Source: Syncephalis fuscata S228
Lineage: Eukaryota; Fungi; Zoopagomycota
Direction of reading: 5' to 3'
Length of the DNA stretch: 64,000 nt
Assembly (NCBI GenBank): GCA_025786725.1
Contig: JAHLTZ010000040.1
Location: 116,980 to 180,979 of the forward strand
Shown here: positions 30,409 through 59,368 of the stretch, piece by piece
Layout: the number at the start of each line of letters is the position of its first letter
How positions within the stretch are numbered: the first letter of the stretch is position 1
Position numbers and translations under genes: made by a program
Notes under the pieces: generated by a model
Databases searched by the model: none
Told to the model about the DNA's origin: nothing
Seen by the model: only the letters and a program-made list of their open reading frames with translations

Positions 30409-30481
30409 AATGAAAAGTTGTAATTGCAAAATCGTAATAATAATAATAATAATAAAATAAAAATATATCCATTTAGATCAT

Positions 30482-31000: not shown

Positions 31001-31036
<36 letters not shown>

Positions 31037-34000
31037 AGTGTAGTCAGATTCATAAGGATGATATTTATCTGGTTCAGTAAAATCCCATGTCCGTGTCTTG
31101 GGTACCGGTAATGGATTGACACTTGCTATATTAGAGGCGATACTATTCGTCGTTGATTGTGCTTGAATAGCCTTTTGTAATGCTTGTAATAAAGCAGGTG
31201 ATAATCCAGTATGACCAGATGGTATATTGGTTGTTGTTGTTGTTGTTGTTGTAGTAGTATTGGTAGGTGGTGGTACGGCTAATGATGTCATATATTCATT
31301 TGTTGACATACTAGGAGGATTAATAGTGGTGGTGGTGGTGGTTAAAGGACGAATAGTCGATACAGGATGATTTAATTGAGCTAGTAATTGAGCTACTGAT
31401 GTATTAGGCGATAGTAATCCACCACTATTTGTACTATTCGTATTAGTATTAATACTAGGTAGAGGTGTAGTATTGTTACTAATCGTATTGATAGAAGTAA
31501 TAGAAGTAGGTGTTGAAACTAATGGTACTCTATAAATAGTAGGTTGTTTATGATCACGACTATCTGGTTGATGCTTCACTCTATTGATATCACTCTGCAT
31601 CTTATTATTACTACTACTACTAATACTACAACTAGTAACAGTAGAGAGTGATTTGGGTTGATGCCATACAATAATACCGAGTAAATAATGATGTGCTGTA
31701 TGGATATCCACTTTATAATCGAGTAAGTCAATAAAAGGTGGCAATTTAGACTGATTAGTAGCAATAGGCACAATATACATATCCTTAACCGAGGATAGTG
31801 TATAGCCTATCACGCCATATCGCTGTCTTGTACTAAAATAGGACCATAATAGATCGTAGGCCTCTTGATACACATGAGAAAGGGGATCAAATCGCACGAG
31901 CAGTAACTGTTTACTACTAGATGATTTGATAATCTGGGTCAAATAGTCATCGGTACGGTTAACGTGGATACGGCCATCAATAGACAGGGCTGCCGGTAAT
32001 AAATCCGCCCACGATGATCGACTCAATTGAGTGGCCCCGGCCACTTGACATGCCGTACATTGTAGATCGGTGACATCAGGCATAAATAATCTACCTTGCC
32101 ATATCACATCGACTGGATCACTACTAGCATCAATCAGTACTGGTTCTAGATCATAATCTGCAAATGGATCATTATCGTCATCGTCATCATTATCATTAAT
32201 ATCGATATCAATGTCATCTGCTCTTATTACATGATTTATATTAGTAACAGACAATGATGCATTATGGTTTAATAAAGTATAATCTCTATTCTGTTCCTTC
32301 ATCGCTTCATCATGAATAGTTGACAATAATGGTGGTGGTGGCGATGCTGATGCCGATATTGAGGAGGCAATTGTCATGAAATCGTCGGGTAATTCCAATT
32401 GATTAACATTAAAATCAGCTAGAGGAGAAACAGGACGTGAACCACTTTTAATATGACTAGTGGTAACTGCTTTAATGGCTTTATCGTCATCGTCATCATC
32501 ATCTTCTTTAAATGGCTTTAATGTACTGGTTGATTCAAATCGATCAAATACTTTATCAAATTTAGATAGTGCATCTTCATGCTCATCTTTACTACTATGA
32601 CTATGACTCGTAGTAGTAGTAGTAGTATAACTATCGGTAAATGTGGCTGTCACTGGCGTAGTGGCTAATGATGTAGTGGCACTATCTCTATCTCTATGTC
32701 GATTAGAGGATTGACTATGTGTAGGAGTTGGTTGTGATGATGATGATGATGGTGGTGGTGGTGGATGATTATCTTCATTATGAGGACGTGTATCACCCAG
32801 CATCGTTTCACCTTTATGGGTTTTTTTAACATAAGCGGATAGATCAATATCTTCAATAATAGAATCTCTAATGCCTTGTTCGCGTACATCTTGGGCTAGA
32901 TTACGTAGTTCTTCATTGGCCATATCTTCATTACTCATACGCACTAATACAGAAGAGGTCACTTGTCCGGAGAGTACACGAAAGCGTAACGAGTTATTCT
33001 TCTTGTCATTTAAACTGAATATAAGACTGCGGTATTTGTTCTTATAATCTTGTCCACATCGACCATGTCCCACTCTATCTGATCTATCGGCCAAGTAATG
33101 GAATAGTGCTTCTTCAATATCCTCCGCATGGGCTTGTAAGTCTTCATCGGTGACTTTAGAGACATCTGTCTTGCCTTTCTCTCCTGCTTCTTGTAGAATA
33201 TTCTTAAGGGCACCGGTTAGTTTATTGACCACCATACGGCGTAGTGGATCGGGACTATGATGGACACTGGCACTGGCACTGGCACTGGCACTAGTACTTG
33301 ATGTTGTACGGTGATGGCCAATGGTAGTGGGACTTGTATCGATACGCGTTAATTTAGGTCGTGTTGATTTAGATTTAGAACGGATGGGTATATTCTCTTC
33401 TTCTTCTACATCCATATCATCTATACCTTCTGTATCATCCTCTTTATTTTCTTCATTCTTATAATCGTCATCGTCATTACTGGTATCTCGTCTCGTTTTG
33501 AATAATCCACTTTTGTTATGAAGTGTGGCATGACTATTACGTCGTGTGGCTTGTTTCTTAGTTATGCTCTGTTCTTCGATATCTTGTTGAGATAGACGAC
33601 GTCGACGTTGAGATGGTGGGCCTGTAGCGCGGTTACGAGGTGGTGGGAATGATAGACCATTGGCCTTTAATTGAACTACTTCAGGACTGTGTTCACATTC
33701 AGCACTGCAAAATGCTGTCCAATCCTCGGCATCATGTGAACAAGAAGGACGAGCACATTTGATAGTACTTGATGTCTATATTAATATTAATATTAATGTT
33801 GGGTTATTATATATATTATATATATTATATTATATTATATTATATTATATAAAAGGTACTTACTGGTGAATGACTTGACTTGTCGTCATTATTACTTATT
33901 ATAGCTGTTGATTCAGGACTATCTTGTTGATCTGAGTTAACAAAGGTTGCTATAATTAATATAAATAGTATAAATTGGTATAAATAGTATAGATTAGTAT

Positions 34001-34724
34001 TTGTTATATATATATATATATATCAATAGCTTACGTTTCATAGCATTCTTGCCCGCCTTGCCTCCAATACCTGGTAGTGTCGATATACATACAGGACAGT
34101 AATAGGTAGTGATTTTAGCCACTTTACCCTTGGTTAATCCAACACATTTAGCATGGTACCTATATTATACATATTAGTTATTAATTATTTGATGATTTGG
34201 TTATTTAATATAAATACTTGCCATTCAGAACAGCCATCACAACTAATCATAACAGTGCCATCATCTGGTTTACGACATAGACAATATAGTTTATCGTCTT
34301 CTATATCTTCTTCATGTTCATGTTCTTCTTCTTCTATATCCTCTACTTGTTCAGTAGTTGCATCAATGACTTTACTGTTATCATTGATACTATTTATGAC
34401 ATCATTTTCTGTTTGTTGGTGGTGGATTGATGTATCGAGTGATTTAACCGCTTCAACATATTGAGCAGTTAATTTACGGGCCCTTTTACTTCTTCTAATA
34501 GGGCCTGTTTCTTGTTCCACTGCTATAGTGTTGTTTTCATGGTGGTTGCTTAAATCGCTACTCTTTATCATTGTTACTTCAGAATCAATACCATTGGTAG
34601 AGCCATTTAATGGCATGTCTTTAGAAAGAATACACGATTCCTCTCCTGCAACAGCAATACTATCCATATCATAAGTTAGGGGAGGTGCTTGTTGCGGTTC
34701 TGATTGATCGGTCATATCCGCCAT
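30482..34724 (-). CDS. BYE1: PHD + TFIIS-central + SPOC protein (Bye1/DIDO1/PHF3 family), 4 exons
   Basis: LYCLCRKPDDGTVMISCDGCSEW|YHAKC; YKNKYRSLIFSLNDKKNNSLR..LVRMSNEDMA; SPOC IWQGRL..IDGRI..RQRYGV..VKDMYIVP. Confidence 0.9.
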
Positions 34725-35111
34725 GACACTCGTTGATAATGGCTGTCACAGCGATTGTAGTAGTAGTAGTAGCAGTAGTAGTTAACTATACTAATAGATC
34801 GCAATTCAATAGAAATACTATCGCTAATACTATCGTCAACGACAGATCAAGAATAAAAGTCACTACAAATGGGTTGAGTTGGGTGGTTTAATGCAAAGTA
34901 GCACGGTAAATGTAAGAAGTGTAATAGTTGTGGTCCTTAAAAATATTGTTAAAATAGACCAATGGTTCTGATTTAATAGATAAATAGAAAGAGTGAAGAA
35001 ATCATTGTGAATTTCCATTGTGTATTACAATTACAATTACAATTTATTATTATATTGTATATTATATTGTATATTATATTGTATATTATTATTATAATGA
35101 CAGTGTTGACT

Positions 35112-36086
35112 TTATTGTTTGCCAAGACAGACAAAATAGATTTCTGCAGAATCTTTTCGAGAGGCCATGGGTTTTTCTATTAATACTTTACGGAATAAGC
35201 CTTGTAAATGGCGTCTAAAGGTTGGATCACCTCCATCCATAAATACCTATATTATAATATATTACATGTTATTTAGTATAATATTATGAATATGCAATAC
35301 GTACTTTGCAAATAAACGTGCCTTCTTTTCTTAAATGTTGTTGGGCGAATTCTAATGCTGCTTCACATAATTCCTATTATTATATATTATTATAACATTA
35401 ATATATATATATAACTTACCATAGATCTTGCTTGATCAACTGTTCTAATACCTATTGATATATATATATATTAGTGGTCTATTAATGATATATACGTGTT
35501 ATTATTATGTACCAGATAACGAGGGTGCCATATCTGATAGTACAACATCAACGGGTTTATCGTCTAATAGTTTGGCCATACGTTGTGTTATTTCATCGGT
35601 TCTAAAGTCACCTTCAATAAAATGAACACCAGTGATAGGAGCCATTGGTAGTAGATCAACGGCTATAACAAGTCCTTCATCCTCTAGTTCTTCGTCGTCG
35701 TCGTCGAGTCTATTTGACTCGGTGTCTGGTGTTGCTATTCTATAGTGGATGCGTGGTTTTTCTGGTTTGACAGCATTACGTAAAATAAGTTCAGCGGCTA
35801 CCTGGCTCCAACCACCTGGACTCGAGCCGCAATCGACACACCGGCACCCCGGCAATAGAAAGCGATGCTTTTCATGCAGTGCCAGTAGTTTATAGGCACT
35901 CCTTGTGCGGTAGCCGTCGGCGCGGGCTTGTCGGGCATAAATATCGTCGCGTTGTCGCTGCAGCCACCGATTAGACGAGCCAGACCTACTATGGGCCATA
36001 GCTATGCCATACGTAGACAAATAGCGTCGCATAGCCCAACCACTACTACTACTACTACTACTCGGCATTAACTTGGCCATAGCCAT
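35112..36086 (-). CDS. MRM2: Mitochondrial rRNA 2'-O-methyltransferase (FtsJ/RrmJ)
   Basis: SNRWLQRQRDDIY..GYRTRSAYKL, DCGSSPGGWSQ, VDVVLSDMAP, KPMASRKDSAEIYFVC. Confidence 0.92.
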
Positions 36087-36186
36087 GTAATTGAGTTTAT
36101 GTTGGTGGTGGTAATATACGCTGTGCAACATAATAAAATAGAAAATAACGCTCAAATATAATTTATTGTTGAAAAATAGCTGTTGC

Positions 36187-36844
36187 TCATTCCACTACTC
36201 CACCTTCGGCTACGACTAAAGCCAGATCCTTTACTGTATCGCGTACTTGATTTGCCAGCTCTAATAATAGACCTGTATAATAATGAAATAGTTGGTTTAT
36301 TGGCTTATTATTACTGTTAGAGTATTATGACCTACCTGTATTGGCTTGTGCGTCAGCAATAAGTGAAATAACTAGAGGTGGTCGCGATGCTTGCACTAAT
36401 TGATGTAGGCCTGTCATACAAGCGACCGTGCGATGACGGCCAAGTCCTAATTTACTAGCCTATAACTAAAATAAATAACACAATTATTAAATAGCATTCT
36501 ATTACCTGTTCGCTAGCTACGGTAAAAGTTGACGACATTGGAGGTTCGTGTAAGTTTTCTCGTGTCTGGTCGGTCATAGCTAGTCGTTTTAAATGAGTAT
36601 TGCTAACTTATAAAACCTTACACGCACCTTGTCCTAGAATAACGCCTTCGCGATCAGTTACTAAGCAGACAAGCAAGTCCCGCGGATGACTATGTGGGAT
36701 TTAGCTTATTGGGCCATAGTATTACTGTTCAATATATACTTACCAGGCGAGTAGTTGATGTAAATAGGATTCTAGCTCATCCCGCTGTTGTTGTTGTGCC
36801 TGAGATTCCTCAACCATTGATGAATCGCTAACATTGGTAGCCAT
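36187..36844 (-). CDS. LAMTOR3: Ragulator subunit LAMTOR3 (MP1), 5 exons; missed by ORF track
   Basis: Spliced: LVTDREGVILG..STFTVASEQ|ASKLGLGRHRTV..QLVQ..PLVISLIADAQANT|GLLLEL. Confidence 0.88.
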
Positions 36845-37284
36845 GTTAAACAACGAGTAGATTAAAAAGAAAGTAAAGGAGGTAAAGTTTTATATTAATT
36901 CTATGGATACTAAAGTTGTTTATCATTTGAATTTAAAGAACTTTTGTTATTGTTATGGTGTATTATTTGAAACAATCACTCATTTGCCAAGTAAAACAAT
37001 ACATCTTTATAAATAACAAACAAACTATATTCATTATGTTTAATACATTTTACTGATTTTAACTATTTTATTATATGTGCTATAACTTCAGCACCAATAT
37101 TCATATTCTTCGCATTATATATTTGTGCTAATATATACCGTTTTACGTTTACTTGGCGTTGCTTACTGAGAGACACTGCCAGCTCGACTCTAGCTTTATT
37201 ATTGCTAATTTTTACTTATTTGGCTTATTGAAATATATACACTATACAATAAATAGTATAAGTATGTGTAGAGTTATTGATTTA

Positions 37285-39195
37285 TTAGAAACATGTATAA
37301 AGTTGGTCATTGATAAGTAGCAATTGTTGGATCGACCAACGTTTATAAGATAGTGTTGTAATACTATCTGGTGAAGCAATTGATAAATCGGGCTTGCCAT
37401 CGACCTTATTAAATAGCCGTGCCTTAATCTCTGACCATAAAAGTCGGTAGGCAAAGAGTGGACTAACAATAATTGTTTCCGATGAAGTTTTGCCATAATC
37501 TGGCATACGGATACCAAGCACATAAAGTAGAACAGCCGATACAATGGTTAGGCCAACGATGTTATATGAAAGTCGAGCAATCATTTTATCGGCATCGATT
37601 GACCATTCAAGATTGAGTAATAGGAAAACATCAATAATATTAAGAAGAAATGCAACAAATGAAGCCGTTGATATGATGGCCAACTGATCGAATACAAGTT
37701 AATTATTAGTAAAAATCAGTAATCAAATAGTTTGGTGTTTATAAACGGTAAAATACTTACGCGAGCTAGAGCATTACGAAGCGATTCGCTAATACAGTTC
37801 TTCATGCTAAGATAGAAAACTACAGCTACACATTTGATTAGAAGTTGTATATGCAATTGTATACACCAATAAATGACTTACTAAAATAGGCAAATATAAG
37901 TGCTGTCAATAGTTGTTGCGATATTAAGAAGTAGCCAAGTATATTGTAAACAATTATATTAACAATATGGTCTGTATCATAACAATCGACGGCGACTATT
38001 ATAAGAACTGCAGTATGTATGATTATCCGCATAGCAAAGCCGATGTGAATGACTATACGGAACAGCCTAATTCTACGTTCAATTTGCTTTCCGAGTTTGA
38101 GGGAGCACCTGATTAATAAAAAGTGTTAATTTACTACATATTGCATATTCATTTTATACATACCAGATAACAAGCAAAAAGTAAAAAGCTATAGAGCATA
38201 GTATCGTAGAAATCTGTATTATAATATGATAACTTAGATCTCCAAAGTTACTAGGAATAACAACTAAGTCAACTGTGAATAGCGATAAAGCTACATTAGC
38301 CTGGCTGTAAAAATGCCACGTATTATTGCTACTTACGCACGACAGCTAAGAAGCCAGCCACAAATGCCAGCGTCCGTAGGTCGGCCTCGAGACTTCCAAA
38401 CAACCATATATATATAAAACTGCCGAGAGCATGCAGAATAAAAAGACATTGATTGTAAAGAATGTCCACATAAATGTTTGGAACCACGGTGAAAGTATAT
38501 AACGTTTCCATGCATTGGGTTCTAATCGGCATGCTATTAGTTGATATATTAAATCGGTGCTTTTAATCTACCTTGTGTCATGTGGCTATAGCTGGAAACT
38601 CTAGCATTTTCATTGCATTGCTAATATCTTTCAGATCTTTATTACGAGCCAATGCTATAGGAATACTTGGTGTATACCTTTTAAAGAAGCTGCCGACAGA
38701 TGCTGAGATTTTACGGAAGGCAGGTCTTAAAAATAAAAGACCACTGGCTGGGGGATAATTGCGGCTGACTATCCATTTCTTGTAATCATCTAGCGTCTTC
38801 TCAAGCTTTAGACGCAAAACAGATTATTAGTTCGATTACCATGGAGTACAGCAAAACTTCAGTTACCTGTCGCATGTTTCTACAGCCGTAGCTTTTTAGT
38901 TTCTCGAGCTCAAAAACCAAAATGATGGATGCAACATCCTTTGGCAGAGTGCTTACTTCTGATATAGTTTCGCCTGGTAAAGGCAGTTTTTTAAGTTCGC
39001 ATCGACATTATTATAGAATTCTGGGATGACCAGCATTCCAGTAATGTTAAAATAATCAAACTCTATCCTAAATGGATCGGCCGTTTTAAACTTGAATACT
39101 GTCTTATTTGTACGCATAATTATTCCACCAACCGCCAGGTGCATTATTTGGCTGATGAAAAACAACAATGACAATAAATATGCCACGAGTGACAT
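37285..39195 (-). CDS. Signal peptide + ectodomain + 7TM receptor-like protein, paralog 1 (indels in this copy)
   Basis: Six-exon model with seven hydrophobic segments; mirror of 49241-51153. Confidence 0.75.
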
Positions 39196-40166
39196 GGCTG
39201 CTGGTATAATAGGTTGTTCGTTGGTCGTAAATTGGCTACTAATAACTTAAAATAGTTGCTAGTATAGTAAATCAGATAAACATTAAGCGTGGCACACAAA
39301 AAAGAATAGCAATCACAGACATGCAATTGTTTGTAAAGTCAATTGACTAAAAAGGATAACTATGAATAAATGGCAATTATTAGAAAGGTTCTGGCCACAA
39401 TATGGTGCAGCATCTACAAGTAAAGCAGTATATTTAACGCATGGGTTTGACCCTTCAAACAGTACATATTCATATTGTATCAACAGTATTAAAAAATACT
39501 GGTTTGGCTGCTAAAAGTGCACGCTTAAATGACTCGCCTATTTACCCTAAGATTAATGACACTTATCTATACACGCGGTCTGTTTTAAAACTGCTTCCTA
39601 ACAAGTACCTGCATCCTCCGACTGTCTTCGTGCCCTTATCTGTCTAAAACCTATACCTTCAATATTTGTTGTTAGCATAAATATTTGCAGCCAAAAAACT
39701 TCTTGGTTTGCAGTATGTTCTATTTTTTATTAATCTTAAATGCAATTAAATTAATCTGTTTGTTAGTAAACATTACTTAAAATACAGTATTCCACTTGTT
39801 TATGATTCTATCAAGATTTAAGCCTAGGAGAGACTTGAGTGTTTTAGTTTACACGTGATTAGTTCAAGCCGCCCCGGTTACATCACTATTGGCTGGAAAA
39901 TGTTTTAAATTATTATGATTAATCTATTAATTACAAGGCATTATTGCGTCTTGGCAAATAATTTGTTATTCCATGTTTATTTGGCGCCGCTCTACTCAGA
40001 GACAGGTCGGTTTGACTCAGCCTTTTATTAATAATCTTAATTTTATTTGGCTTATTAAAACATGCACACTAACACATTAAACAATATTAATATATATATA
40101 TATATTAATTTACTAGAAACATGTATTAAGTTGGTTGTTGATAGATAGCAATCCCTAGATTAATTA

Positions 40167-42036
40167 CTATGTAGGAGATAGTGTTGTAATACTATTCGGT
40201 GACATAACTGATAAATCGGGCTTGTCATTAGCCTTATTAAACAGCCGCATTTTAATTTCTAACCATAAAAGCCGATAGGTAAGTAAAGGACTGACGATGA
40301 TCGTTTTAGATGAAGTTTTGCCATTATAATTTGGCATACGGACACCAAGTGCGTAGAGTAGAATAGCAGATTGGATAGTTAGACCGACAATTCTATATGC
40401 ACGCCGAGCGATCATTTTATCAGCATAGATCGACCAATCGAGATCAAGTTCTAAGAAAGTATCAATAGTACCAATGAGAAAGGCAACAAATGTGGCAGTT
40501 GAGATTATGGCCAGCTAATTAAAGTTAAATTAAATATTATTAAAAAGTAAAAATCAAATAGTTTGACGTCTATAAATGATAAAATACTTACGCGAGCTAG
40601 AGCATTACGAACGGATCCACTGTTACAGTTCTTCATAACTAAATAGAAAACCACAGCTTTGTATTTGATTAAAATTTGTATATGTAATTGTATACACCAA
40701 TAAATGACTTACTAGAATAGGCAAAGATAAACGCAGTTAATAACTCTAAAGAAATCAAGACGTAGCTAAATATATCATAGATAAATTTATAGCCGTAATA
40801 GCTTGTATCGTAATAATCAACAGCGATTATTGTAAGAGATGCAATACGCGCAATAATTCGCATAACAAAGCTGATATGAATAACTATGCGAAATACTTTA
40901 GCTCTATGTTCAATTTGTTTGTCGAATTTGAGTGAGCACCTAATTATTATTGTTATGATTAATCATCTATAATATTGCATATTCATTTATACATACCAAA
41001 TAATGAGTAAAAAATAAAAAGATACAGTAAACAATATCAAATAAATCTCTACTATAATATGATAGCTCAACTTTCCGAAATTACCAGGAATAGTTGCTAA
41101 ACCAACTGTAAATGAAATAAAAGCATATTAGTTTGGTTGTAGAAATGATTTATATTATTGTTGTTACTTACGCATGACAGAAATAAAACCAAATACAAAT
41201 GCCAGTGTTCGTAAATCAATTTCTAAACTTCCAGATAACCAAACATATGTAATACTGCCGAGAGCATGCAGAATAAAAACGATGTTAATTGCAAAAGACG
41301 TCCAAATAAATGCTTGGAACCACGGTGAAAGTATATATTGTCTCCATATATTGGTTTCTAATTAGTATGCCATTAGTTGATATATTAAATCGGTGCTTTT
41401 AATCTACCTTGTGTCATGGTGGCTATAGCTGGAAACTCTAGCATTTTCATTGCATTGCTAATATCTTTCAGATCTTTATGACGAGTCATTGCTATGGGAA
41501 TACTTGGTGCATACTCTTTAAATAAATTGCTGGAAATTATCGAGATTTTACGAAAACCACCTCTTATTAACAAAAGGCCACTGACTGGAGGATACTGGTG
41601 ACTGGCTATCCATTTTTTGTAATCATCTAGCGTCTCTTCGATCTATCGGAAACAAAGGAAACAAAAGAAATATTAGCAAATATTATTATAAATTATGGCA
41701 AAAATCTATATTTACCTGTTGCATTGTTTTGCAGCCATGGCTTTTTATTTTTGAAAGCTCAAAAACTAAAATAATGGATGTAACATTCTTTGGCAGAGTG
41801 TTTACTCCTAATATATTTTCTCCTGGCAAAGGCAGTTTCTCGATTTTACAATCAACATCATTATAGAATTCTGGAATGACCAGCATGCCAGTAATGTTAA
41901 AATAATCAAACTGTATTCCAACTGGATCAGTCGTCTTGAACTTAAATATTGTATTATTTGACTGCATAACAATTGCACCGATTGCCAGGTGGATTATCTG
42001 ACAGATAAAAGATAACAATAGCAACAAACGTGCCAT
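40167..42036 (-). CDS. Signal peptide + ectodomain + 7TM receptor-like protein, diverged tandem paralog 2
   Basis: Same intron positions and motifs as paralog 1 (FDYFNITGMLVIPEFYN, PSIPIA, EPN.W, LRNALAR, LLY.LG.RMP). Confidence 0.75.
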
Positions 42037-43249
42037 GAGTAATATGATTGCTGATATGATAAATAGGCCTTTAGCCGTGAATTGATTAATAAGAAATAGA
42101 AGTAGCTACTAAGATAATAGGCTGGATATAAACATTAATTATGACACACAACAAAGAATAGTAATCACAGATATGGAATTGTTTGTAAAATTAGCTACCT
42201 AATAAGGAATTAATATGGATAAATAACAATGATTAGAAAAGGTTTGATTACAATATGGCCCATTATTTATGACGGAGCAGCAGTATATTTAACGCATGGC
42301 CTTGGCCCTTCCAATATATTTTCAAGCATTATCAGCTACATCAAGCAATACCGGTTTGGGCTGCTAACAACGCATGGTTAAAATGGCTTATCCATTCAAT
42401 CTATGACCAAAACTATCTGTTTATACCCACAGTTTGTTTCAAACCTGATTTCAAAGAAGCATTCTTTATCTTCTAAATGACTTCTATTTCTTCTGTGTCT
42501 AAATTATATCTAACACTATTTACTATTATATACCGACCGGCTTCCTTTGTATTATTTCAGTGTCGTTACTTATCATTACTTGCCTATTTATTGATTGCGC
42601 ATCATGTCCATACATCACAACGTTTTAATTTAATTACTTAATTTGTATTACAACATCAACATAATATCTATTTTATCATAAATTTATTATCCAGTAGCAT
42701 ATATACTCTATTTGCCCATATTATTTTCATTTTATACTTAAACTATTACAAGTCATTTTATTGTACAATGAACACGTTTTATTAATAGATATTTAGCTAT
42801 TTATTAATGACTGTATTTGCTATAAACTTTAATTTGTTTGCTTGCTGCATTCACTTATTCACATACATAATAGCTTCAACACTATTATTCCTGTATTTTA
42901 TTTTGTTCACTTATTCCGTTCTACACTATTCTATATCTATTATCCACGCTTTATAGATTTTGAATTGGCTTAAACAAATAAAATGCATATACTATACGTC
43001 TATTATAGCATTTCTATATTTTATTTGTCTATACATTTAAAATTATATCAGTTTACTATTATACAATTAATTACTTGACATAAATACGGAATAGAATAAA
43101 AACATAAAACCGAGCCAATCTACAGTGAGCCAAGTTTTGACAACAATCATATCAAAGTGCAACAGGTGTGAATAAAAGTTTTCACAGTCATCGCATCTTG
43201 TTTTTTTTCATTCCATCGTTTATTTTACCAGCATATAATATCTGTCAAG

Positions 43250-44725
43250 ATGGGAGGAGGCGATCTCGTAAGTCATGGATAAGTGCATATATGCTTATTT
43301 ATTTACGCCGTATGAGTAGAATTTGAAAAAGTCCTGGCATACAGGCACATTCCGTAATCAGGAGACAGTATGGAAACGCGAACAAGAAGTGGCCGAGGAA
43401 AACAAGAAACTTGAGCAACTAAGAAAAGAACTGGAAGAGGAGAGACAGTTACAGGAGTTGCAACGGATTCAGGAATCATCAGGAGTACGGTAAGCTAGCG
43501 ATGAGGTAATATACGGTCACTACTAACAGACAATTGTAGGAAACGTGCAGAACGACTAGAATGGATGTATGCTGCTGGTCCTGGACAGTCTGCAGCCACA
43601 CGTAATGCAGATCTTGAACAATATCTGTTAGGAAAGAAGCGAGTTGATGATATTGTTGATGCAGGCCATACAGTTGATGAGGTAAAACATATAGACATTT
43701 ATACTTGCATTAATTAACTAAACTGTCTATTAACATTACATGTAGCTGTCAGCAAACTCTACATCAATCTTTCAACAAGCGATGAATCAAAAAGCAAACA
43801 ATATACGCGATACATTTGCCAAAGTGCGAGAAGACCCGTTATTGATGATCAAGAAGCGAGAACAACAGAGCTTGGAAAATATTATGAGTAATCCAGTAAA
43901 GATGAAGCAGCTAGCTGAGGTAAATAAATGTCTATTTAATATATTAATTCGCTAATTTAAATTATTTCAGTCTAAAAAAGGCATTGTAAAGGACAAAAAG
44001 AAGAAAGAAAAGAAAGAGAAAAAGCACCGAAATAGACATCGGGAAAGTGAGAGCAGTGATAGAGAAGATGGCGATGAAGTAACATCGGCTCATTATCATA
44101 AACGTCAACGGTCTCGTTCACCAAATAGATCTGATTTTTATAGAGAAATACAGCGATGTTAACAGAGCATCCATGTGGATAGACGTGATTATCGTCGTTA
44201 TGACCGACGCAGTTCTCGCTCACCTTCTTCTAGAAAACATCGCAGCCCGAATAATTATAGACCACATCGTGATCATGGTCGACACGAAAACAATTATGCA
44301 CGATCACGACACCATGAAGAACGACAACGACAACATTCATCGTCAAATGCTGCACCAGACGATAAAGCGTTAAAGGAACAAGAGCGTCAACGTCGTTTAG
44401 CTGCTATGGTGTCAGATGCAGAAGCATTGGATCGTGAAAGAGACACACGTATTGAGACTAGTATGAAAGAAGAAGCTGAACAAGAGAGGCGAGACCAAGC
44501 AGTTCGAATGGAACGTGGCCGTCATGGCACAGGACGTGATTTCTTAAGGCAAGTACAGCTACTATTTACTCTGTTATAACATACGATCTAATCAATGTTT
44601 GTGTGTTGATGTATTATAGTGAGACGAGCCGTGCCATCTACGGTACAGCCGATTCTCTTCGGTTAGAAGATCGAGTTCGACGTAATCGAGCTGGACTTCA
44701 ACGTCAAAGTGCCGTTAGAGAATAG
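43250..44725 (+). CDS. CWC25: Pre-mRNA splicing factor Cwc25
   Basis: MGGGDL|NLKKSWHTGTFRNQETVWKREQ, ERLEWMY, EQYLLGK, KVREDPLLMIKKREQ. Confidence 0.95.
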
Positions 44726-44800
44726 AAATGAATAATAGGGACCGTTATTAGTTTTATTATTAGCATATTTTGATTATTAAACAAAAATTTAATCGCTGTA

Positions 44801-47389
<2,589 letters not shown>

Positions 47390-49240
47390 AGTGTTAAAAA
47401 ATAAAAGCGAGAATAAAAGTCTACATCTGATAACAAATGTTTCATAAACCAGGTTATCCAATAGGCGGTCACGATAGTAATACTAAGGACCAGTTAATAA
47501 GTACAATAAGCGACATAAATCGAGGTTTATTAGTAATAGGGCTAGTGATAAGTAGATAGTAATGTTTGATAGAACAAAGACAGTATGCAAAAATCATATA
47601 TTAGAAGGAAGGTATATTGGCAAAAGCATGAATAATGGTGCTGAAGTTGGAGTGTGTATAAATTAATGAGTGAAATGAATAAAGTGTGTTGAAACATATA
47701 GCAAGTAGAATATAGCTATTATATTATAAAATGATATATGGCAGTATAAGTATACAATGGAAATGATATAGTTAGATAGATGATAATAATGGTAATAAAT
47801 CTATGATGACAAGTAACTTGATGATTGATGTCACTCATCAACTAGTGCCATGTTCAATAGATTGAATGTTAATTCAATTGCGCGAATATTATTAAACATG
47901 GTTATCTAGCTCCTAAATTAGATTAGATTAGCAATAGACCGTTTAATAACAATAGTTGAAATGATGAAACAATTAACTAAACTATTGATATTATTGGTTA
48001 ATGAGTAGCGCGCAGTAGCTGTAACGAGTTTAGCCAATTGTGATGTGCTAGTATTTACAAACTAAGAAGCTATTTTTATTTAATTAATAAAAGGAATAAC
48101 ATACGTGTGATGATATTATAATACAAATGAAATAGCTGAATGTCGTATTAGAGCAGTCTGAGGATGAATGTGATGGGCAACCATAGATAGGCAAGTAATC
48201 ATAAGAAGCAATGCTAGTATGAATGTACAATATAATTTATTTATATCAAGCTTTTAGTTATACTAACTTGTTGTTAAGGCATTTCTGAGGTGATGAATAG
48301 CCATTGTAACCTGTAGAATATGTCTGTATAGTATCGGCATCGTAGCTTAGATATGATGGCATATTCGTCTGGCATTTGGTATAACATGCCACGCTGCATG
48401 TAATAAGCGTAGAAGAAATTGCATGATGGTCCAAGCTGCAAAGCCTTGGAATAAAAAAATCATGTTTTGGCAAATGCAGCAAAACCGGTTGACATATAAA
48501 TAGCAAAGTATATTCCAATTGGTAGTAATGTTTTGTAACAAATGTATTAAAATGCTTAAAACATTTCTCTATTAATGGCAATACAAATAGTTGGAGTAGC
48601 TTGGATTAGTTACGTATAAAATAAAACACAGATTTCTCCCTAGGTTTACAACTCGATAGAGTTGTAAAAAAGTGCAGCACTGCATTTTGGGTACTGTTTA
48701 TTAATAAACAAACCAACTTATTACATTTGGAATTAATAAACGGATAGTGCCTACTGCAGGCCGAGTGGTTTTTGACTATAGATATGCACCTAACACAAAT
48801 AGGAAGGTATAGGTTTTAGACAATAGGGCACGGAGACAGTCGAGATGCAGTGCTTGTAGGATCGTTTTAAAACAGACCGCGTGCATAGACAATGTCATTA
48901 TCTTGGGTAAATAACAAGTCATTTAGCATGCACTTTTAGCAGCCAAACCAGTATTTTTTAATACTGTTGATACAATATGAATATGTGCTGTTTGAAGGGT
49001 CAAGCCCGCGTTAAATATACTGCTTTACTTGTAGATGCTGCACCATATTGTGACCAGAACCTTTCTAATAATTGCCATTTATTCTTATAATTAATTGACT
49101 TTACAAACAATTGCATGTCTGTGATTGCTATTCTTTTTGTGTGCCACGCTTAATGTTTATCTGATTTACTATACTAGCAGCTATTTTAAGTTATTAGTAG
49201 CCAATTTACGACCAACGAACAACCTATTATACCAGCAGCC

Positions 49241-51153
49241 ATGTCACTCGTGGCAATTTATTGTCATTGTTGTTTTTCATCAGCCAAATAATGCACCTGG
49301 CGGTTGGTGGAATAATTATGCGTACAAATAAGACAGTATTCAAGTTTAAAACGGCCGATCCATTTAGGATAGAGTTTGATTATTTTAACATTACTGGAAT
49401 GCTGGTCATCCCGGAATTCTATAATAATGTCGACTGCGAACTTAAAAAACTGCCTTTACCAGGCGAAACTATATCAGAAGTAAACACTCTGCCAAAGGAT
49501 GTTGCATCCATCATTTTGGTTTTTGAGCTCGAGAAACTAAAAAGCTACGGCTGTAGAAACATGCGACAGGTAATTGAAGTTTTGCTGTACTCCATGGTAA
49601 TCGAACTAATAATCTATTTTGCGTCTAAAGCTTGAGAAGACGTTAGATGATTACAAGAAATGGATAGTCAGCCGCAATTATCCCCCAGCCAGTGGTCTTT
49701 TATTTTTAAGACCTGCCTTCCGTAAAATCTCAGCATCTGTCGGCAGCTTCTTTAAAAGGTATACACCAAGTATTCCTATAGCATTGGCTCGTAATAAAGA
49801 TCTGAAAGATATTAGCAATGCAATGAAAATGCTAGAGTTTCCAGCTATAGCCACTATGACACAAGGTAGATTAAAAGCACCGATTTAATATATCAACTAA
49901 TAGCATGCCGATTAGAACCCAATGCATGGAAACGTTATATACTTTCACCGTGGTTCCAAACATTTATGTGGACATTCTTTACAATCAATGTCATTTTTAT
50001 TCTGCATGCTCTCGGCAGTTTTATATATATATGGTTGTTTGGAAGTCTCGAGGCCGACCTACGGACGCTGGCATTTGTGGCTGGCTTCTTAGCTGTCGTG
50101 CGTAAGTAGCAATAATACGTGGCATTTTTACAGCCTGGCTAATGTAGCTTTATCGCTATTCACAGTTGACTTAGTTGTTATTCCTAGTAACTTTGGAGAT
50201 CTAAGTTATCATATTATAATACAGATTTCTACGATACTATGCTCTATAGCTTTTTACTTTTTGCTTGTTATCTGGTATGTATAAAATGAATATGCAATAT
50301 GTAGTAAATTAACACTTTTTATTAATCAGGTGCTCCCTCAAACTCGGAAAGCAAATTGAACGTAGAATTAGGCTGTTCCGTATAGTCATTCACATCGGCT
50401 TTGCTATGCGGATAATCATACATACTGCAGTTCTTATAATAGTCGCCGTCGATTGTTATGATACAGACCATATTGTTAATATAATTGTTTACAATATACT
50501 TGGCTACTTCTTAATATCGCAACAACTATTGACAGCACTTATATTTGCCTATTTTAGTAAGTCATTTATTGGTGTATACAATTGCATATACAACTTCTAA
50601 TCAAATGTGTAGCTGTAGTTTTCTATCTTAGCATGAAGAACTGTATTAGCGAATCGCTTCGTAATGCTCTAGCTCGCGTAAGTATTTTACCGTTTATAAA
50701 CACCAAACTATTTGATTACTGATTTTTACTAATAATTAACTTGTATTCGATCAGTTGGCCATCATATCAACGGCTTCATTTGTTGCATTTCTTCTTAATA
50801 TTATTGATGTTTTCCTATTACTCAATCTTGAATGGTCAATCGATGCCGATAAAATGATTGCTCGACTTTCATATAACATCGTTGGCCTAACCATTGTATC
50901 GGCTGTTCTACTTTATGTGCTTGGTATCCGTATGCCAGATTATGGCAAAACTTCATCGGAAACAATTATTGTTAGTCCACTCTTTGCCTACCGACTTTTA
51001 TGGTCAGAGATTAAGGCACGGCTATTTAATAAGGTCGATGGCAAGCCCGATTTATCAATTGCTTCACCAGATAGTATTACAACACTATCTTATAAACGTT
51101 GGTCGATCCAACAATTGCTACTTATCAATGACCAACTTTATACATGTTTCTAA
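49241..51153 (+). CDS. 7TM receptor-like protein, inverted copy of paralog 1
   Basis: Mirror of 37285-39195; 1-nt deletion near 49256; several substitutions in the 5' part. Confidence 0.75.
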
Positions 51154-51595
51154 TAAATCAATAACTCTACACATACTTATACTATTTATTGTATAGTGTA
51201 TATATTTCAATAAGCCAAATAAGTAAAAATTAGCAATAATAAAGCTAGAGTCGAGCTGGCAGTGTCTCTCAGTAAAGCAACGCCAAGTAAACGTAAAACG
51301 GTATATATTAGCACAAATATATAATGCGAAGAATATGAATATTGGTGCTGAAGTTATAGCACATATAATAAAATAGTTAAAATCAGTAAAATGTATTAAA
51401 CATAATGAATATAGTTTGTTTGTTATTTATAAAGATGTATTGTTTTACTTGGCAAATGAGTGATTGTTTCAAATAATACACCATAACAATAACAAAAGTT
51501 CTTTAAATTCAAATGATAAACAACTTTAGTATCCATAGAATTAATATAAAACTTTACCTCCTTTACTTCTCTTTTTAATCTACTCGTTGTTTAAC

Positions 51596-52253
51596 ATGGC
51601 TACCAATGTTAGCGATTCATCAATGGTTGAGGAATCTCAGGCACAACAACAACAGCGGGATGAGCTAGAATCCTATTTACATCAACTACTCGCCTGGTAA
51701 GTATATATTGAACAGTAATACTATGACCCAATAAGCTAAATCCCACATAGTCATCCGCGGGACTTGCTTGTCTGCTTAGTAACTGATCGCGAAGGCGTTA
51801 TTCTAGGACAAGGTGCGTGTAAGGTTTTATAAGTTAGCAATACTCATTTAAAACGACTAGCTATGACCGACCAGACACGAGAAAACTTACACGAACCTCC
51901 AATGTCGTCAACTTTTACCGTAGCTAGCGAACAGGTAATAGAATGCTATTTAATAATTGTGTTATTTATTTTAGTTATAGGCTAGTAAATTAGGACTTGG
52001 CCGTCATCGCACGGTCGCTTGTATGACAGGCCTACATCAATTAGTGCAAGCATCGCGACCACCTCTAGTTATTTCACTTATTGCTGACGCACAAGCCAAT
52101 ACAGGTAGGTCATAATACTCTAACAGTAATAATAAGCCAATAAACCAACTATTTCATTATTATACAGGTCTATTATTAGAGCTGGCAAATCAAGTACGCG
52201 ATACAGTAAAGGATCTGGCTTTAGTCGTAGCCGAAGGTGGAGTAGTGGAATGA
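51596..52253 (+). CDS. LAMTOR3: LAMTOR3, inverted-repeat copy
   Basis: Mirror of 36187-36844. Confidence 0.88.
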
Positions 52254-52353
52254 GCAACAGCTATTTTTCAACAATAAATTATATTTGAGCGTTATTTTCT
52301 ATTTTATTATGTTGCACAGCGTATATTACCACCACCAACATAAACTCAATTAC

Positions 52354-53332
52354 ATGGCTATGGCCAAGTTAATGCCGAGTAGTAGTAGTAGTAGTAGTGG
52401 TTGGGCTATGCGACGCTATTTGTCTACGTATGGCATAGCTATGGCCCATAGTAGGTCTGGCTCGTCTAATCGGTGGCTGCAGCGACAACGCGACGATATT
52501 TATGCCCGACAAGCCCGCGCCGACGGCTACCGCACAAGGAGTGCCTATAAACTACTGGCACTGCATGAAAAGCATCGCTTTCTATTGCCGGGGTGCCGGT
52601 GTGTCGATTGCGGCTCGAGTCCAGGTGGTTGGAGCCAGGTAGCCGCTGAACTTATTTTACGTAATGCTGTCAAACCAGAAAAACCACGCATCCACTATAG
52701 AATAGCAACACCAGACACCGAGTCAAATAGACTCGACGACGACGACGAAGAACTAGAGGATGAAGGACTTGTTATAGCCGTTGATCTACTACCAATGGCT
52801 CCTATCACTGGTGTTCATTTTATTGAAGGTGACTTTAGAACCGATGAAATAACACAACGTATGGCCAAACTATTAGACGATAAACCCGTTGATGTTGTAC
52901 TATCAGATATGGCACCCTCGTTATCTGGTACATAATAATAACACGTATATATCATTAATAGACCACTAATATATATATATATATCAATAGGTATTAGAAC
53001 AGTTGATCAAGCAAGATCTATGGTAAGTTATATATATATATATTAATGTTATAATAATATATAATAATAGGAATTATGTGAAGCAGCATTAGAATTCGCC
53101 CAACAACATTTAAGAAAAGAAGGCACGTTTATTTGCAAAGTACGTATTGCATATTCATAATATTATACTAAATAACATGTAATATATTATAATATAGGTA
53201 TTTATGGATGGAGGTGATCCAACCTTTAGACGCCATTTACAAGGCTTATTCCGTAAAGTATTAATAGAAAAACCCATGGCCTCTCGAAAAGATTCTGCAG
53301 AAATCTATTTTGTCTGTCTTGGCAAACAATAA
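52354..53332 (+). CDS. MRM2: MRM2, inverted-repeat copy
   Basis: Mirror of 35112-36086; identical ORF translation. Confidence 0.92.
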
Positions 53333-53722
53333 AGTCAACACTGTCATTATAATAATAATATACAATATAATATACAATATAATATACAATATAATAATAA
53401 ATTGTAATTGTAATTGTAATACACAATGGAAATTCACAATGATTTCTTCACTCTTTCTATTTATCTATTAAATCAGAACCATTGGTCTATTTTAACAATA
53501 TTTTTAAGGACCACAACTATTACACTTCTTACATTTACCGTGCTACTTTGCATTAAACCACCCAACTCAACCCATTTGTAGTGACTTTTATTCTTGATCT
53601 GTCGTTGACGATAGTATTAGCGATAGTATTTCTATTGAATTGCGATCTATTAGTATAGTTAACTACTACTGCTACTACTACTACTACTACAATCGCTGTG
53701 ACAGCCATTATCAACGAGTGTC

Positions 53723-56700
53723 ATGGCGGATATGACCGATCAATCAGAACCGCAACAAGCACCTCCCCTAACTTATGATATGGATAGTATTGCTGTTGCA
53801 GGAGAGGAATCGTGTATTCTTTCTAAAGACATGCCATTAAATGGCTCTACCAATGGTATTGATTCTGAAGTAACAATGATAAAGAGTAGCGATTTAAGCA
53901 ACCACCATGAAAACAACACTATAGCAGTGGAACAAGAAACAGGCCCTATTAGAAGAAGTAAAAGGGCCCGTAAATTAACTGCTCAATATGTTGAAGCGGT
54001 TAAATCACTCGATACATCAATCCACCACCAACAAACAGAAAATGATGTCATAAATAGTATCAATGATAACAGTAAAGTCATTGATGCAACTACTGAACAA
54101 GTAGAGGATATAGAAGAAGAAGAACATGAACATGAAGAAGATATAGAAGACGATAAACTATATTGTCTATGTCGTAAACCAGATGATGGCACTGTTATGA
54201 TTAGTTGTGATGGCTGTTCTGAATGGCAAGTATTTATATTAAATAACCAAATCATCAAATAATTAATAACTAATATGTATAATATAGGTACCATGCTAAA
54301 TGTGTTGGATTAACCAAGGGTAAAGTGGCTAAAATCACTACCTATTACTGTCCTGTATGTATATCGACACTACCAGGTATTGGAGGCAAGGCGGGCAAGA
54401 ATGCTATGAAACGTAAGCTATTGATATATATATATATATATAACAAATACTAATCTATACTATTTATACCAATTTATACTATTTATATTAATTATAGCAA
54501 CCTTTGTTAACTCAGATCAACAAGATAGTCCTGAATCAACAGCTATAATAAGTAATAATGACGACAAGTCAAGTCATTCACCAGTAAGTACCTTTTATAT
54601 AATATAATATAATATAATATAATATAATATATATAATATATATAATAACCCAACATTAATATTAATATTAATATAGACATCAAGTACTATCAAATGTGCT
54701 CGTCCTTCTTGTTCACATGATGCCGAGGATTGGACAGCATTTTGCAGTGCTGAATGTGAACACAGTCCTGAAGTAGTTCAATTAAAGGCCAATGGTCTAT
54801 CATTCCCACCACCTCGTAACCGCGCTACAGGCCCACCATCTCAACGTCGACGTCGTCTATCTCAACAAGATATCGAAGAACAGAGCATAACTAAGAAACA
54901 AGCCACACGACGTAATAGTCATGCCACACTTCATAACAAAAGTGGATTATTCAAAACGAGACGAGATACCAGTAATGACGATGACGATTATAAGAATGAA
55001 GAAAATAAAGAGGATGATACAGAAGGTATAGATGATATGGATGTAGAAGAAGAAGAGAATATACCCATCCGTTCTAAATCTAAATCAACACGACCTAAAT
55101 TAACGCGTATCGATACAAGTCCCACTACCATTGGCCATCACCGTACAACATCAAGTACTAGTGCCAGTGCCAGTGCCAGTGCCAGTGTCCATCATAGTCC
55201 CGATCCACTACGCCGTATGGTGGTCAATAAACTAACCGGTGCCCTTAAGAATATTCTACAAGAAGCAGGAGAGAAAGGCAAGACAGATGTCTCTAAAGTC
55301 ACCGATGAAGACTTACAAGCCCATGCGGAGGATATTGAAGAAGCACTATTCCATTACTTGGCCGATAGATCAGATAGAGTGGGACATGGTCGATGTGGAC
55401 AAGATTATAAGAACAAATACCGCAGTCTTATATTCAGTTTAAATGACAAGAAGAATAACTCGTTACGCTTTCGTGTACTCTCCGGACAAGTGACCTCTTC
55501 TGTATTAGTGCGTATGAGTAATGAAGATATGGCCAATGAAGAACTACGTAATCTAGCCCAAGATGTACGCGAACAAGGCATTAGAGATTCTATTATTGAA
55601 GATATTGATCTATCCGCTTATGTTAAAAAACCCATAAAGGTGAAACGATGCTGGGTGATACACGTCCTCATAATGAAGATAATCATCCACCACCACCACC
55701 ATCATCATCATCATCACAACCAACTCCTACACATAGTCAATCCTCTAATCGACATAGAGATAGAGATAGTGCCACTACATCATTAGCCACTACGCCAGTG
55801 ACAGCCACATTTACCGATAGTTATACTACTACTACTACTACGAGTCATAGTCATAGTAGTAAAGATGAGCATGAAGATGCACTATCTAAATTTGATAAAG
55901 TATTTGATCGATTTGAATCAACCAGTACATTAAAGCCATTTAAAGAAGATGATGATGACGATGACGATAAAGCCATTAAAGCAGTTACCACTAGTCATAT
56001 TAAAAGTGGTTCACGTCCTGTTTCTCCTCTAGCTGATTTTAATGTTAATCAATTGGAATTACCCGACGATTTCATGACAATTGCCTCCTCAATATCGGCA
56101 TCAGCATCGCCACCACCACCATTATTGTCAACTATTCATGATGAAGCGATGAAGGAACAGAATAGAGATTATACTTTATTAAACCATAATGCATCATTGT
56201 CTGTTACTAATATAAATCATGTAATAAGAGCAGATGACATTGATATCGATATTAATGATAATGATGACGATGACGATAATGATCCATTTGCAGATTATGA
56301 TCTAGAACCAGTACTGATTGATGCTAGTAGTGATCCAGTCGATGTGATATGGCAAGGTAGATTATTTATGCCTGATGTCACCGATCTACAATGTACGGCA
56401 TGTCAAGTGGCCGGGGCCACTCAATTGAGTCGATCATCGTGGGCGGATTTATTACCGGCAGCCCTGTCTATTGATGGCCGTATCCACGTTAACCGTACCG
56501 ATGACTATTTGACCCAGATTATCAAATCATCTAGTAGTAAACAGTTACTGCTCGTGCGATTTGATCCCCTTTCTCATGTGTATCAAGAGGCCTACGATCT
56601 ATTATGGTCCTATTTTAGTACAAGACAGCGATATGGCGTGATAGGCTATACACTATCCTCGGTTAAGGATATGTATATTGTGCCTATTGCTACTAATCAG

Positions 56701-57420
56701 TCTAAATTGCCACCTTTTATTGACTTACTCGATTATAAAGTGGATATCCATACAGCACATCATTATTTACTCGGTATTATTGTATGGCATCAACCCAAAT
56801 CACTCTCTACTGTTACTAGTTGTAGTATTAGTAGTAGTAGTAGTAATAATAAGATGCAGAGTGATATCAATAGAGTGAAGCATCAACCAGATAGTCGTGA
56901 TCATAAACAACCTACTATTTATAGAGTACCATTAGTTTCAACACCTACTTCTATTACTTCTATCAATACGATTAGTAACAATACTACACCTCTACCTAGT
57001 ATTAATACTAATACGAATAGTACAAATAATGGTGGATTACTATCGCCTAATACATCAGTAGCTCAATTACTAGCTCAATTAAATCATCCTGTATCGACTA
57101 TTCGTCCTTTAACCACCACCACCACCACCACTATTAATCCTCCTAGTATGTCAACAAATGAATATATGACATCATTAGCCGTACCACCACCTACCAATAC
57201 TACTACAACAACAACAACAACAACAACCAATATACCATCTGGTCATACTGGATTATCACCTGCTTTATTACAAGCATTACAAAAGGCTATTCAAGCACAA
57301 TCAACGACGAATAGTATCGCCTCTAATATAGCAAGTGTCAATCCATTACCGGTACCCAAGACACGGACATGGGATTTTACTGAACCAGATAAATATCATC
57401 CTTATGAATCTGACTACACT

Positions 57421-57456
<36 letters not shown>

Positions 57457-57975
57457 CTAAATAATAATAATAACCTAAATAGTACGAATAGTAACTTGAA
57501 TAGTAATATGAATAGTAATTATCATGATACGGATATGTCATCTACGGCCGATACAAGATCTAATTACCACCACACATATCAACCACCACCACCACCAAGA
57601 CATCCATCCAATAGTAACTATAATTACTATGATCATAGTAACAACAACAACAACAACAACAGCCATCATAGTAATGAACAAGAACAACATCAATCTAGAT
57701 CGGTTCGTCGTTTCTCTTCTCATAACTACAAGAATACTATGAATAGTGATTATCGGCCTAATTATAATGAAGATACACCATCCAATCAGTATTCATATAC
57801 ATCAACCCAACATCGATATGATACATCTCATCGAGGAAGAGGTCATCATCAACAACATAGTGGATATCGACACTATCGACATAATAATAATAACCACCAT
57901 AACAGTAATAACAATAATAGTAACAATAATAATGATAGTCATGGATCACATCGATCTTATTATCATCATTCATAA
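53723..57975 (+). CDS. BYE1: Bye1/DIDO1-like, inverted-repeat copy (homopolymer frameshift near 55630)
   Basis: Mirror of 30482-34724. Confidence 0.88.
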
Positions 57976-58048
57976 ATGATCTAAATGGATATATTTTTAT
58001 TTTATTATTATTATTATTATTACGATTTTGCAATTACAACTTTTCATT

Positions 58049-59245: not shown

Positions 59246-59368
59246 TGGGTTATTTGCTGATCTTTGGTTTTAATGAAGCGCGTGGGCGCGTTGTGATTTA
59301 AAAGAGAGTGTGAAAACAACATTATACTCGTTTATTCCTTCAATCGTTTATTCTTTTATTGTGTTGAT

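Follow-up and report, generated by a model that had tools for sequence, protein, structure and literature searches.

Large palindromes of the human Y and X chromosomes reportedly stay near-identical through arm-to-arm gene conversion, as Rozen et al. are said to have described in 2003. The locus presented here, from the zoopagalean mould and mould parasite Syncephalis fuscata, resembles these palindromes in having arms of, probably, more than 99 % identity around a unique spacer, multi-copy genes at the inner ends of the arms, a decay of identity at the boundary, and a spacer that might be inverted as a by-product. It is unlike them in that it is autosome-like, that its arms carry mostly housekeeping genes, and that conversion is deduced from a single assembly. 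In Ogataea polymorpha and Komagataella, flip/flop mating-type switching involves an invertible segment between inverted repeats; the system consists of a 19-kb region for which both orientations have been seen, with MAT genes and with one side under centromeric or telomeric repression (PMC5720833, PMC6692504). The S. fuscata locus also has inverted repeats around a several-kb segment that homologous recombination could invert, but a single orientation is seen, the cargo consists of CWC25, NDOR1, and a receptor paralog, and the host is not a yeast. Inverted duplications can furthermore arise at existing inverted repeats through fold-back or template switching (PMC3907307, PMC11293582, PMC10622511). 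A single-copy spacer and an inner junction located in older inverted homology, here that of paralogs A and C, are shared with such cases. These are de novo human or yeast events of which both junctions were sequenced, whereas the one in S. fuscata would be an evolutionary event with an inner junction blurred to a gradient and a second junction that falls in an assembly gap.

The window, i.e., the whole stretch of DNA that was analyzed, covers the terminal 64 kb of an S. fuscata contig (C307) of 180,979 bp, the end of which is window position 64000. A single-copy core of ~4.7 kb contains CWC25 (43323-44710, forward strand; Pfam Cir_N, E 1.7e-15), the ortholog of the annotated CWC25 of S. plumigaleata, and a gene for an NDOR1/TAH18-like diflavin reductase (44800-47567, reverse strand), recognized by synteny and by its Flavodoxin_1, FAD_binding_1, and NAD_binding_1 domains. 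The latter gene is covered by a spliced 2.4-kb RNA contig (public run X1). Together with receptor-like paralog B, these two genes occupy the 8.5-kb spacer between the palindrome arms. The left arm (L; 24454-39590), delimited by self-blast and represented in a redundant contig, C138, that covers 26642-42057, holds, according to Pfam assignments among others, a secreted-peptide unit, an HIU hydrolase, a TFIIS_M+SPOC protein, an FtsJ methyltransferase, MAPKK1_Int, and receptor copy A. MAPKK1_Int (LAMTOR3-like; 36331-36889, reverse strand) was placed as the syntenic left neighbor by tblastn against the S. plumigaleata locus and has a mirror copy (51584-52109, forward strand) in the right arm (R; 48864-63998), the inverted copy of L that reaches the end of C307. 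RNA genes or tRNAs were not found between 36 and 53 kb, and no second copy of the unique left flank (18000-22270) is present anywhere in the assembly. Three inverted pairs with arms of 1.3-3.3 kb and 98-99 % identity were also observed inside the large contigs C101, C201, and C35, away from contig ends.

Four copies of the receptor-like gene were considered. Copy A (37285-39195, reverse strand) was recognized from open reading frame pieces with a signal peptide, an ectodomain, and 7 helices, and is expressed; its version in C307 has 1-bp deletions at sites at which A and C differ. Unit B (39975-42528, reverse strand; coding part approximately 40167-42036) is its tandem paralog and has, for every exon equivalent, open segments that match the S. 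plumigaleata homolog. Copy C (49241-51153, forward strand) contains, as assembled, a 1-bp deletion after codon 5. The fourth copy, P4, is an unlinked paralog on contig C168. The two public runs that were found are small contig sets. Run X1, which is read as RNA because its contigs are spliced, covers NDOR1 and receptor copy A: its contig over 49054-49823 bears A-type variants, and only A-type receptor RNA, no C-type transcript, was seen among its spliced contigs. Run X2, labelled 'DNA?', touched only the dispersed repeat described below.

Searches with the receptor were run exon by exon. Pfam recognized no family on the exons taken one by one nor on the annotated homologs, an Atlas search with exon 1 gave no usable match, the nearest Atlas clusters are unnamed, and an exact-protein look-up with the 977-aa open reading frame returned no record. 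Six hits were obtained among 1.84 billion representatives, and all those with a name are from Syncephalis. A low-confidence AlphaFold model (pLDDT 60) has a signal helix and an alpha/beta ectodomain followed by 7 long helices. With this model, Foldseek returned GPCR and PA-domain rows that are weak throughout (E 0.085 at best) and no significant match in the PDB. From the model and the searches, we infer a Syncephalis-restricted orphan family of putative 7TM-like proteins, in which a signal peptide and an ectodomain precede 7 transmembrane helices.

The stronger old homology at the locus, that of B with C and that between the upstream DNA of A and of C, had not been cited in an earlier, sequence-only reading of this DNA. 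Unit B is 74.8 % identical to A and, in inverted orientation, 74.9 % identical to C over 2.5 kb (self-blast). What that reading had noticed, namely that the upstream DNA of the right-hand receptor gene is related to the upstream DNA of both left paralogs, was found to be correct, with a 72 % block in the case of B and 70 % identity in that of A. The match of 42545-42680 with the reverse complement of 48100-48235, for which the quoted sequence strings are present, reached a local score of 34, where 200 dinucleotide shuffles averaged 11.7 ± 1.6 (z 13.9); the same-strand control gave a z of -0.5. In a four-way alignment, the block upstream of B (42555-42662) corresponds to the reverse complement of that upstream of C (48107-48219) with 71.7 % identity over 106 positions. 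The former adjoins a deletion of ~590 bp relative to C and P4. The same block was found upstream of the unlinked P4 by local blast and alignment (72.3 % identity to that of C), the copies of B, C, and P4 being 69-72 % alike, which shows that the homology is not private to the inverted pair. Upstream DNA of C in fact aligns with that of P4 over about 1.6 kb. Genome searches with 42530-42675 gave no copy elsewhere, the paralogs apart; 47970-48500 also matches a stretch of contig C337 at 73 %, where the DNA is repeat-like. As judged from these alignments, the matched pair is upstream DNA carried within the duplication unit of the gene family, a unit with 1.1-1.6 kb or more of such DNA. A conserved cis-element was considered as well and rejected, as the block is conserved no better than its neighbors and is not conserved in S. 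plumigaleata; such a reading is also unneeded, because shared ancestry suffices for the block.

The upstream DNA of A (39591-39971) has escaped homogenization. It is 70.0 % identical to the reverse complement of 48815-48499 and 65.5 % identical to P4, and its end at 39971, at which the 3' end of unit B cuts it off, is the junction of the tandem duplication. Its diverged counterpart upstream of C (48499-48863) forms the inner edge of the right arm. The two share their 70 % identity along 310 nt that lie immediately inward of the edge of the near-identical arms, and either of them is 63-66 % identical to the P4 upstream DNA. These unconverted sequences have thus diverged about as far from each other as from an unlinked paralog, in agreement with the proposal that the copies stood in inverted orientation before the near-identical arms came into being. 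The accompanying argument that a plain assembly fold-back cannot yield diverged homology also holds, since the part with 70-75 % identity is left unexplained by it. Divergences among the family copies are star-like (63-75 %) and do not fix the order of tandem and inverted duplication.

A second match, of 42670-42900 with the reverse complement of 47630-47810, had been put forward in the same sense. The similarity is real (z 7.9) and could be aligned over about 42653-42794 and 47718-47831, but it does not testify to an old inverted repeat. Both halves, a fragment upstream of B (42653-42794) and a copy located against the 5' end of NDOR1 (47504-47880), belong to a dispersed repeat that is present in hundreds of copies, with at least 40 scored hits genome-wide (56 and 722 first-look candidates, respectively). 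The two local copies are 70 % alike and either is 64-81 % identical to unrelated copies; as they are no closer to each other than to these, the pair adds no support and was discarded as a sign of the old repeat.

Synteny was compared with one related species, S. plumigaleata, in which the order is MAPKK1_Int, CWC25, NDOR1, one receptor gene, and WD40, a receptor gene being absent on the left. The single receptor gene, oriented divergently to NDOR1, is located at the place of C, which makes C the ancestral copy and A and B later, inverted gains. The comparison upholds an inverted symmetry older than the arms; it does not favor flipping of the core, as the assembled orientation is the ancestral one. 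Upstream DNA of the two species is not alignable (z below 2), and the homology among the upstream sequences of the paralogs consequently points to duplications after the species split. A left receptor copy may, alternatively, have been lost in S. plumigaleata rather than gained in S. fuscata.

Self-blast of 24454-39970 against 63998-48499 gave 98.4 % identity over 15.6 kb. Identity of the arms is probably ~99.5 % if the sequence of C138 is used as the clean version of the left one. At the inner edge, the identity of A and C falls from 99.5 % (39100-39300) to 94.9 % (39301-39590) and 70 % (39651-39971), and this graded decay spans 38790-39971, which lies within the old A/C homology. An arm edge inside old paralog homology, together with graded decay, fits seeding by inverted paralogs, and the old inverted pair could plausibly have seeded the palindrome, as had been suggested.

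The reading that we favor, and consider rather probable, is that the weak inverted matches are remains of a duplicated gene-family unit, and that the inverted paralogs later seeded the palindrome. Homology, synteny, the gradient, and membership in a dispersed repeat are shown by the data; how the events followed one another, by which mechanism of recombination, and that the right arm is real are the parts that we infer. The C unit would have been copied in inverted orientation across CWC25 and NDOR1 after the species split, and the inverted copy would then have been duplicated in tandem to give A and B. The single-copy core would thereby have become enclosed in an inverted repeat, which is old by now and has about 70-75 % identity. 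Much later, A and C would have interacted by gene conversion, by fold-back or break-induced replication, or by template switching. In this way, an inverted copy of A and the left flank may have taken the place of the body of C and of all DNA beyond, which would have produced a palindrome with an inner edge fading from 99.5 % over 95 % to 70 % and with arms that measure 15.5 kb or more.

In the competing explanation that survives best, the near-identical right arm is an artefact: the assembler would have passed from gene C into reverse-complemented reads of A and have continued back along the left flank, while in reality C is followed by WD40, the order of S. plumigaleata. The right arm does stop exactly at the contig end, and the assembly does contain indel errors and redundant contigs. 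Contig C340 opens, at its base 1, inside the syntenic neighbor WD40, the 3' exons of which were found nowhere in the assembly; it follows that the outer junction of the palindrome is unassembled. The differences between the arms point the other way. At isolated sites, these comprise 17 transitions to 1 transversion, and C138 has the L variant at all of them. The variants private to R are almost all transitions and occur along the length of the arm; two of them (36714 and 36870) are located past the receptor gene, in the mirror copy of MAPKK1_Int. C138 has differences of its own from C307, which are transition-biased as well (25:5) and occur only inside the duplicated part, no differences being present in 2.2 kb of unique DNA upstream of A and in B. 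Differences of C138 confined to the duplicated part, combined with the variants private to R, indicate that two real versions of the arm are present in the data. Long reads should, moreover, span the shared gene body of ~2 kb. The transition-biased, arm-specific variants argue that the right arm is real, and we regard the artefact as unlikely.

A much bolder alternative is a programmed invertible cassette in which a flip changes the active receptor gene or promoter in the style of the Ogataea MAT locus. The sequence-only reading had proposed such flipping of the core by recombination between the receptor genes. A discrete segment is indeed flanked by inverted repeats, both the near-identical arms and the older pair of B and C. 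The arms agree without a mismatch over as much as 1,699 bp, and A and C over as much as 1,139 bp, which would make them excellent substrates for recombination. Receptor RNA, as far as seen, was solely of the A type, so that expression may differ between the copies. No sign of two orientations was found, however: C307 and the only extra contig, the independent C138, are in the same phase over 26642-42057, although an inversion makes no new junction and contigs therefore cannot reveal it. The ancestral orientation of the assembled core also speaks against a cassette. The proposed swap of receptor promoters or 5' ends does not follow either, because crossovers between A and C would fall within identical gene bodies, by which every promoter-gene pair would be left unchanged and nothing functional would be swapped. 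B and C, which are 75 % identical and agree without interruption over 61 bp at most, are too diverged for ready recombination. The analogy with MAT flip-flop fails on the cargo, which is formed by the housekeeping genes CWC25 and NDOR1 and paralog B, MAT genes being absent. The frameshift after codon 5 would account just as well for a silent C. In a non-exhaustive scan of the genes in the arms and the spacer, a recombinase was not noticed. The spacer could invert by a crossover between the arms like that of any palindrome; no sign of an inversion or of an effect was seen. A programmed cassette is accordingly judged very improbable. It seems just as far-fetched that the spacer isomerizes in growing mycelium and that its orientation sets the expression of the receptor copies by a position effect; if true, this would be a flip/flop-type switch outside the yeasts, made from orphan receptor paralogs.

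Chance similarity in AT-rich intergenic DNA (the region has ~30 % G+C and the matches are just 68-72 % identical) has a negligible probability as the source of the weak inverted matches, being refuted by the scores of both matches relative to the shuffles and by the colinear block in a third, unlinked paralog.

Nothing seen at the locus speaks for a novel type of genetic switch. Users of the assembly should regard C307 and C340 as neighbors across an unassembled gap, which truncates the WD40 gene, and should be aware that the consensus of one arm is contaminated by reads of the other, by which gene models are broken. If the right arm is real, the S. fuscata locus would be a clear natural case of a known route to palindromes, in which small, old inverted paralogs seed a larger inverted duplication, with an ancestral state that a sister species still shows and a junction that persists as an identity gradient.

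Self-comparison of the window of Syncephalis fuscata, a zoopagalean mycoparasite, revealed a large inverted repeat (24454-39970 against 63998-48499) and a gene unit of 2.5 kb that is present three times. Unit A (37147-39674, minus strand) lies in tandem with unit B (39975-42528, minus strand), to which it is 75% identical, while unit C (48866-51292, plus strand) matches A at ~100% and B at 75%. Since the genome is intron-rich, genes were read as exon pieces and exons were searched one by one. The single-copy middle, or spacer, carries CWC25, with a Cir_N domain, and an NDOR1-like diflavin reductase with the domains Flavodoxin_1, FAD_binding_1 and NAD_binding_1. NDOR1 is covered by a spliced RNA contig, from which its AT-AC (U12-type) intron (46571-46634, minus strand) has been removed. 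The left arm contains a TFIIS_M+SPOC gene as a single 977-aa ORF (30482-33415, minus strand); in its right-arm copy (55037-57975, plus strand) an indel, which may be genuine or an assembly error, splits the assembled ORF into 249 and 775 aa. At 26417, 26425 and 26965 (right arm 62034, 62026 and 61484), the right-arm copy of a secreted-peptide unit agrees with the tandem paralog (22116-24588) and not with the left-arm copy.

The family to which A, B and C belong has no Pfam family and gave only six matches in a set of 1.84 billion cluster representatives; every match with a name is from Syncephalis. In a model of the ortholog from S. plumigaleata (pLDDT 60), a signal helix is followed by an alpha/beta ectodomain and then by seven long helices; Foldseek returned weak GPCR and PA-domain rows only, and none of the closest Atlas clusters has a name. 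The label "receptor-like" is thus plausible for these predicted proteins. The one receptor RNA contig found carries A-type variants along its whole length, no C-type transcript being seen, and in the assembly C is missing 1 bp after codon 5.

The gene order in S. plumigaleata (JAIXMF010000023.1) is MAPKK1_Int(-), a 156-aa gene(-), CWC25(+), NDOR1(-), receptor homolog(+), WD40(-), AAA, kinase and CoA ligase. MAPKK1_Int matches the window at 36331-36889 and, mirrored, at 51584-52109. Searches with tblastn in both directions found one receptor at the S. plumigaleata locus and none on its left. As this single receptor occupies the right-hand place, C is the ancestral copy in its ancestral orientation, and A and B are additions beyond CWC25-NDOR1, inverted relative to C. 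The spacer, too, is assembled in the ancestral orientation.

A and C share a stretch that has escaped homogenization (39651-39971 against 48815-48499) and is only 70% identical; the same stretch is 65.5% (A) and 63% (C) identical to P4, a fourth paralog on another contig (C168:72.9-76.2 kb). Toward the gene, A and C become more alike, with 94.9% identity at 39301-39590, 99.5% at 39100-39300 and close to 100% after that, so that the edge of the near-identical arms falls, in a graded manner, within older paralog homology. The proposal of the sequence-only reading that inverted paralogs predate the palindrome is therefore upheld on stronger evidence than it had itself put forward. The old inverted paralogs probably gave rise to the palindrome, and the sequence fits seeding by recombination between them, which could have proceeded by conversion, fold-back/break-induced replication or template switch. 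Seeding at inverted homologous segments has comparison cases elsewhere (PMC3907307; PMC11293582; PMC10622511).

That reading had also taken two weak inverted matches as remnants of an eroded repeat around the spacer, which was half right. The match of 42545-42680 to the reverse complement of 48100-48235 is genuine homology within the locus family (local score 34, z 13.9, where dinucleotide shuffles reach 11.7 ± 1.6; a same-strand control was flat). A genome search found no further copy of 42530-42675; the C-side query also matched part of contig C337 at 73%, inside repeat-like DNA. P4 aligns with C across the gene and ~1.6 kb of upstream DNA, and a four-way alignment showed that the block is shared by B, C and P4 at 69-72%, ~590 bp of C and P4 being missing from B. 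The block is no better conserved than neighboring DNA, and no alignment of the upstream DNA to S. plumigaleata could be made; the block thus reflects shared ancestry in a young, lineage-specific family and is not a conserved element. The DNA upstream of A breaks off at 39971 against the 3' end of B, the signature of a tandem duplication that left the original far-upstream DNA with B.

The second match, of 42670-42900 to the reverse complement of about 47630-47810, is above chance (z 7.9), but both halves (42653-42794 and 47504-47880) are members of a dispersed repeat, for which the genome yields hundreds of candidates. At 70% identity, the local pair is no more alike than either member is to unrelated copies, so this match gives no independent support for an old inverted repeat. 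The repeat measures ~380-500 bp and occurs hundreds of times across the 29-Mb genome; single loci often match in both orientations. One copy adjoins the 5' end of NDOR1, whose transcript extends into it.

Whether the right arm exists has to be weighed, as it extends off the contig end: window position 64000 is the last of the 180,979 bases of contig C307 (window, C307:116980-180979). Also against it, the S. fuscata WD40 ortholog starts, already truncated, at base 1 of another contig, C340, and the assembly as a whole lacks its 3' exons. Beyond WD40, C340 (1-10000) is colinear, gene by gene, with the right flank in S. plumigaleata, through AAA, kinase and CoA ligase, so that C307 and C340 are neighbors across an unassembled gap. 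In favor of the arm, isolated differences between the arms comprise 17 transitions to 1 transversion, and two (36714, 36870) lie beyond the receptor gene. A redundant contig, C138 (15,176 bp), matches window 26642-42057, that is, the left arm, the DNA upstream of A, and B. It agrees with the left arm at all isolated arm differences and departs from both C307 arms at ~30 isolated sites (25:5 transition-biased), in the duplicated part only; none occurs in 2.2 kb of unique A-upstream/B DNA, where ~8 were expected. The C307 left arm has single-base deletions at several sites where the right arm and C138 carry different bases (38444, 38581, 39001, 36870, 26712, 27132, 27564 and 28332). These look like a polishing artefact of mixed reads, and they break the frame of receptor copy A, whose deposited model (KAI9592065.1) has only 324 aa. 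The simplest reading is that two true arm sequences, ~99.5% alike, exist and that the C307 left arm was polished with mixed reads; C138 is probably the clean version of that arm. On balance, we hold the right arm to be quite likely real.

With exact runs of up to 1,699 bp, the arms are an ideal recombination substrate, and a spontaneous inversion polymorphism, as in any palindrome, is possible. An inversion makes no new junction and is thus invisible in contigs; over the 12 kb of arm nearest the spacer, C138 is in reference phase, crossovers further out lying beyond its reach. A programmed switch, for which the same substrates would serve, is very improbable. B and C recombine poorly on paper (75% identity, longest exact run 61 bp), and an A-by-C crossover falls in identical gene bodies, so that each promoter/5' end stays on an identical gene and the suggested swap of receptor promoters has no effect. 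Unlike the flip/flop of Ogataea (PMC5720833), the locus has no MAT genes and the spacer carries housekeeping genes, which leaves the invertible cassette and its mating-type analogy unsupported.

Other inverted pairs occur inside large contigs, at C101:272-298 kb (3.3 kb), C201:234-256 kb (2.7 kb) and C35:43-67 kb (1.3 kb). They are 98-99% identical and ~16-18 kb apart, and may be the terminal inverted repeats of large elements; C101 also has a ~2.3-kb tandem array of 26-bp period near 294.9-297.2 kb.

With the caveat that the assembly here runs to a contig end, the S. fuscata locus is a fresh instance of an already known kind of structure.
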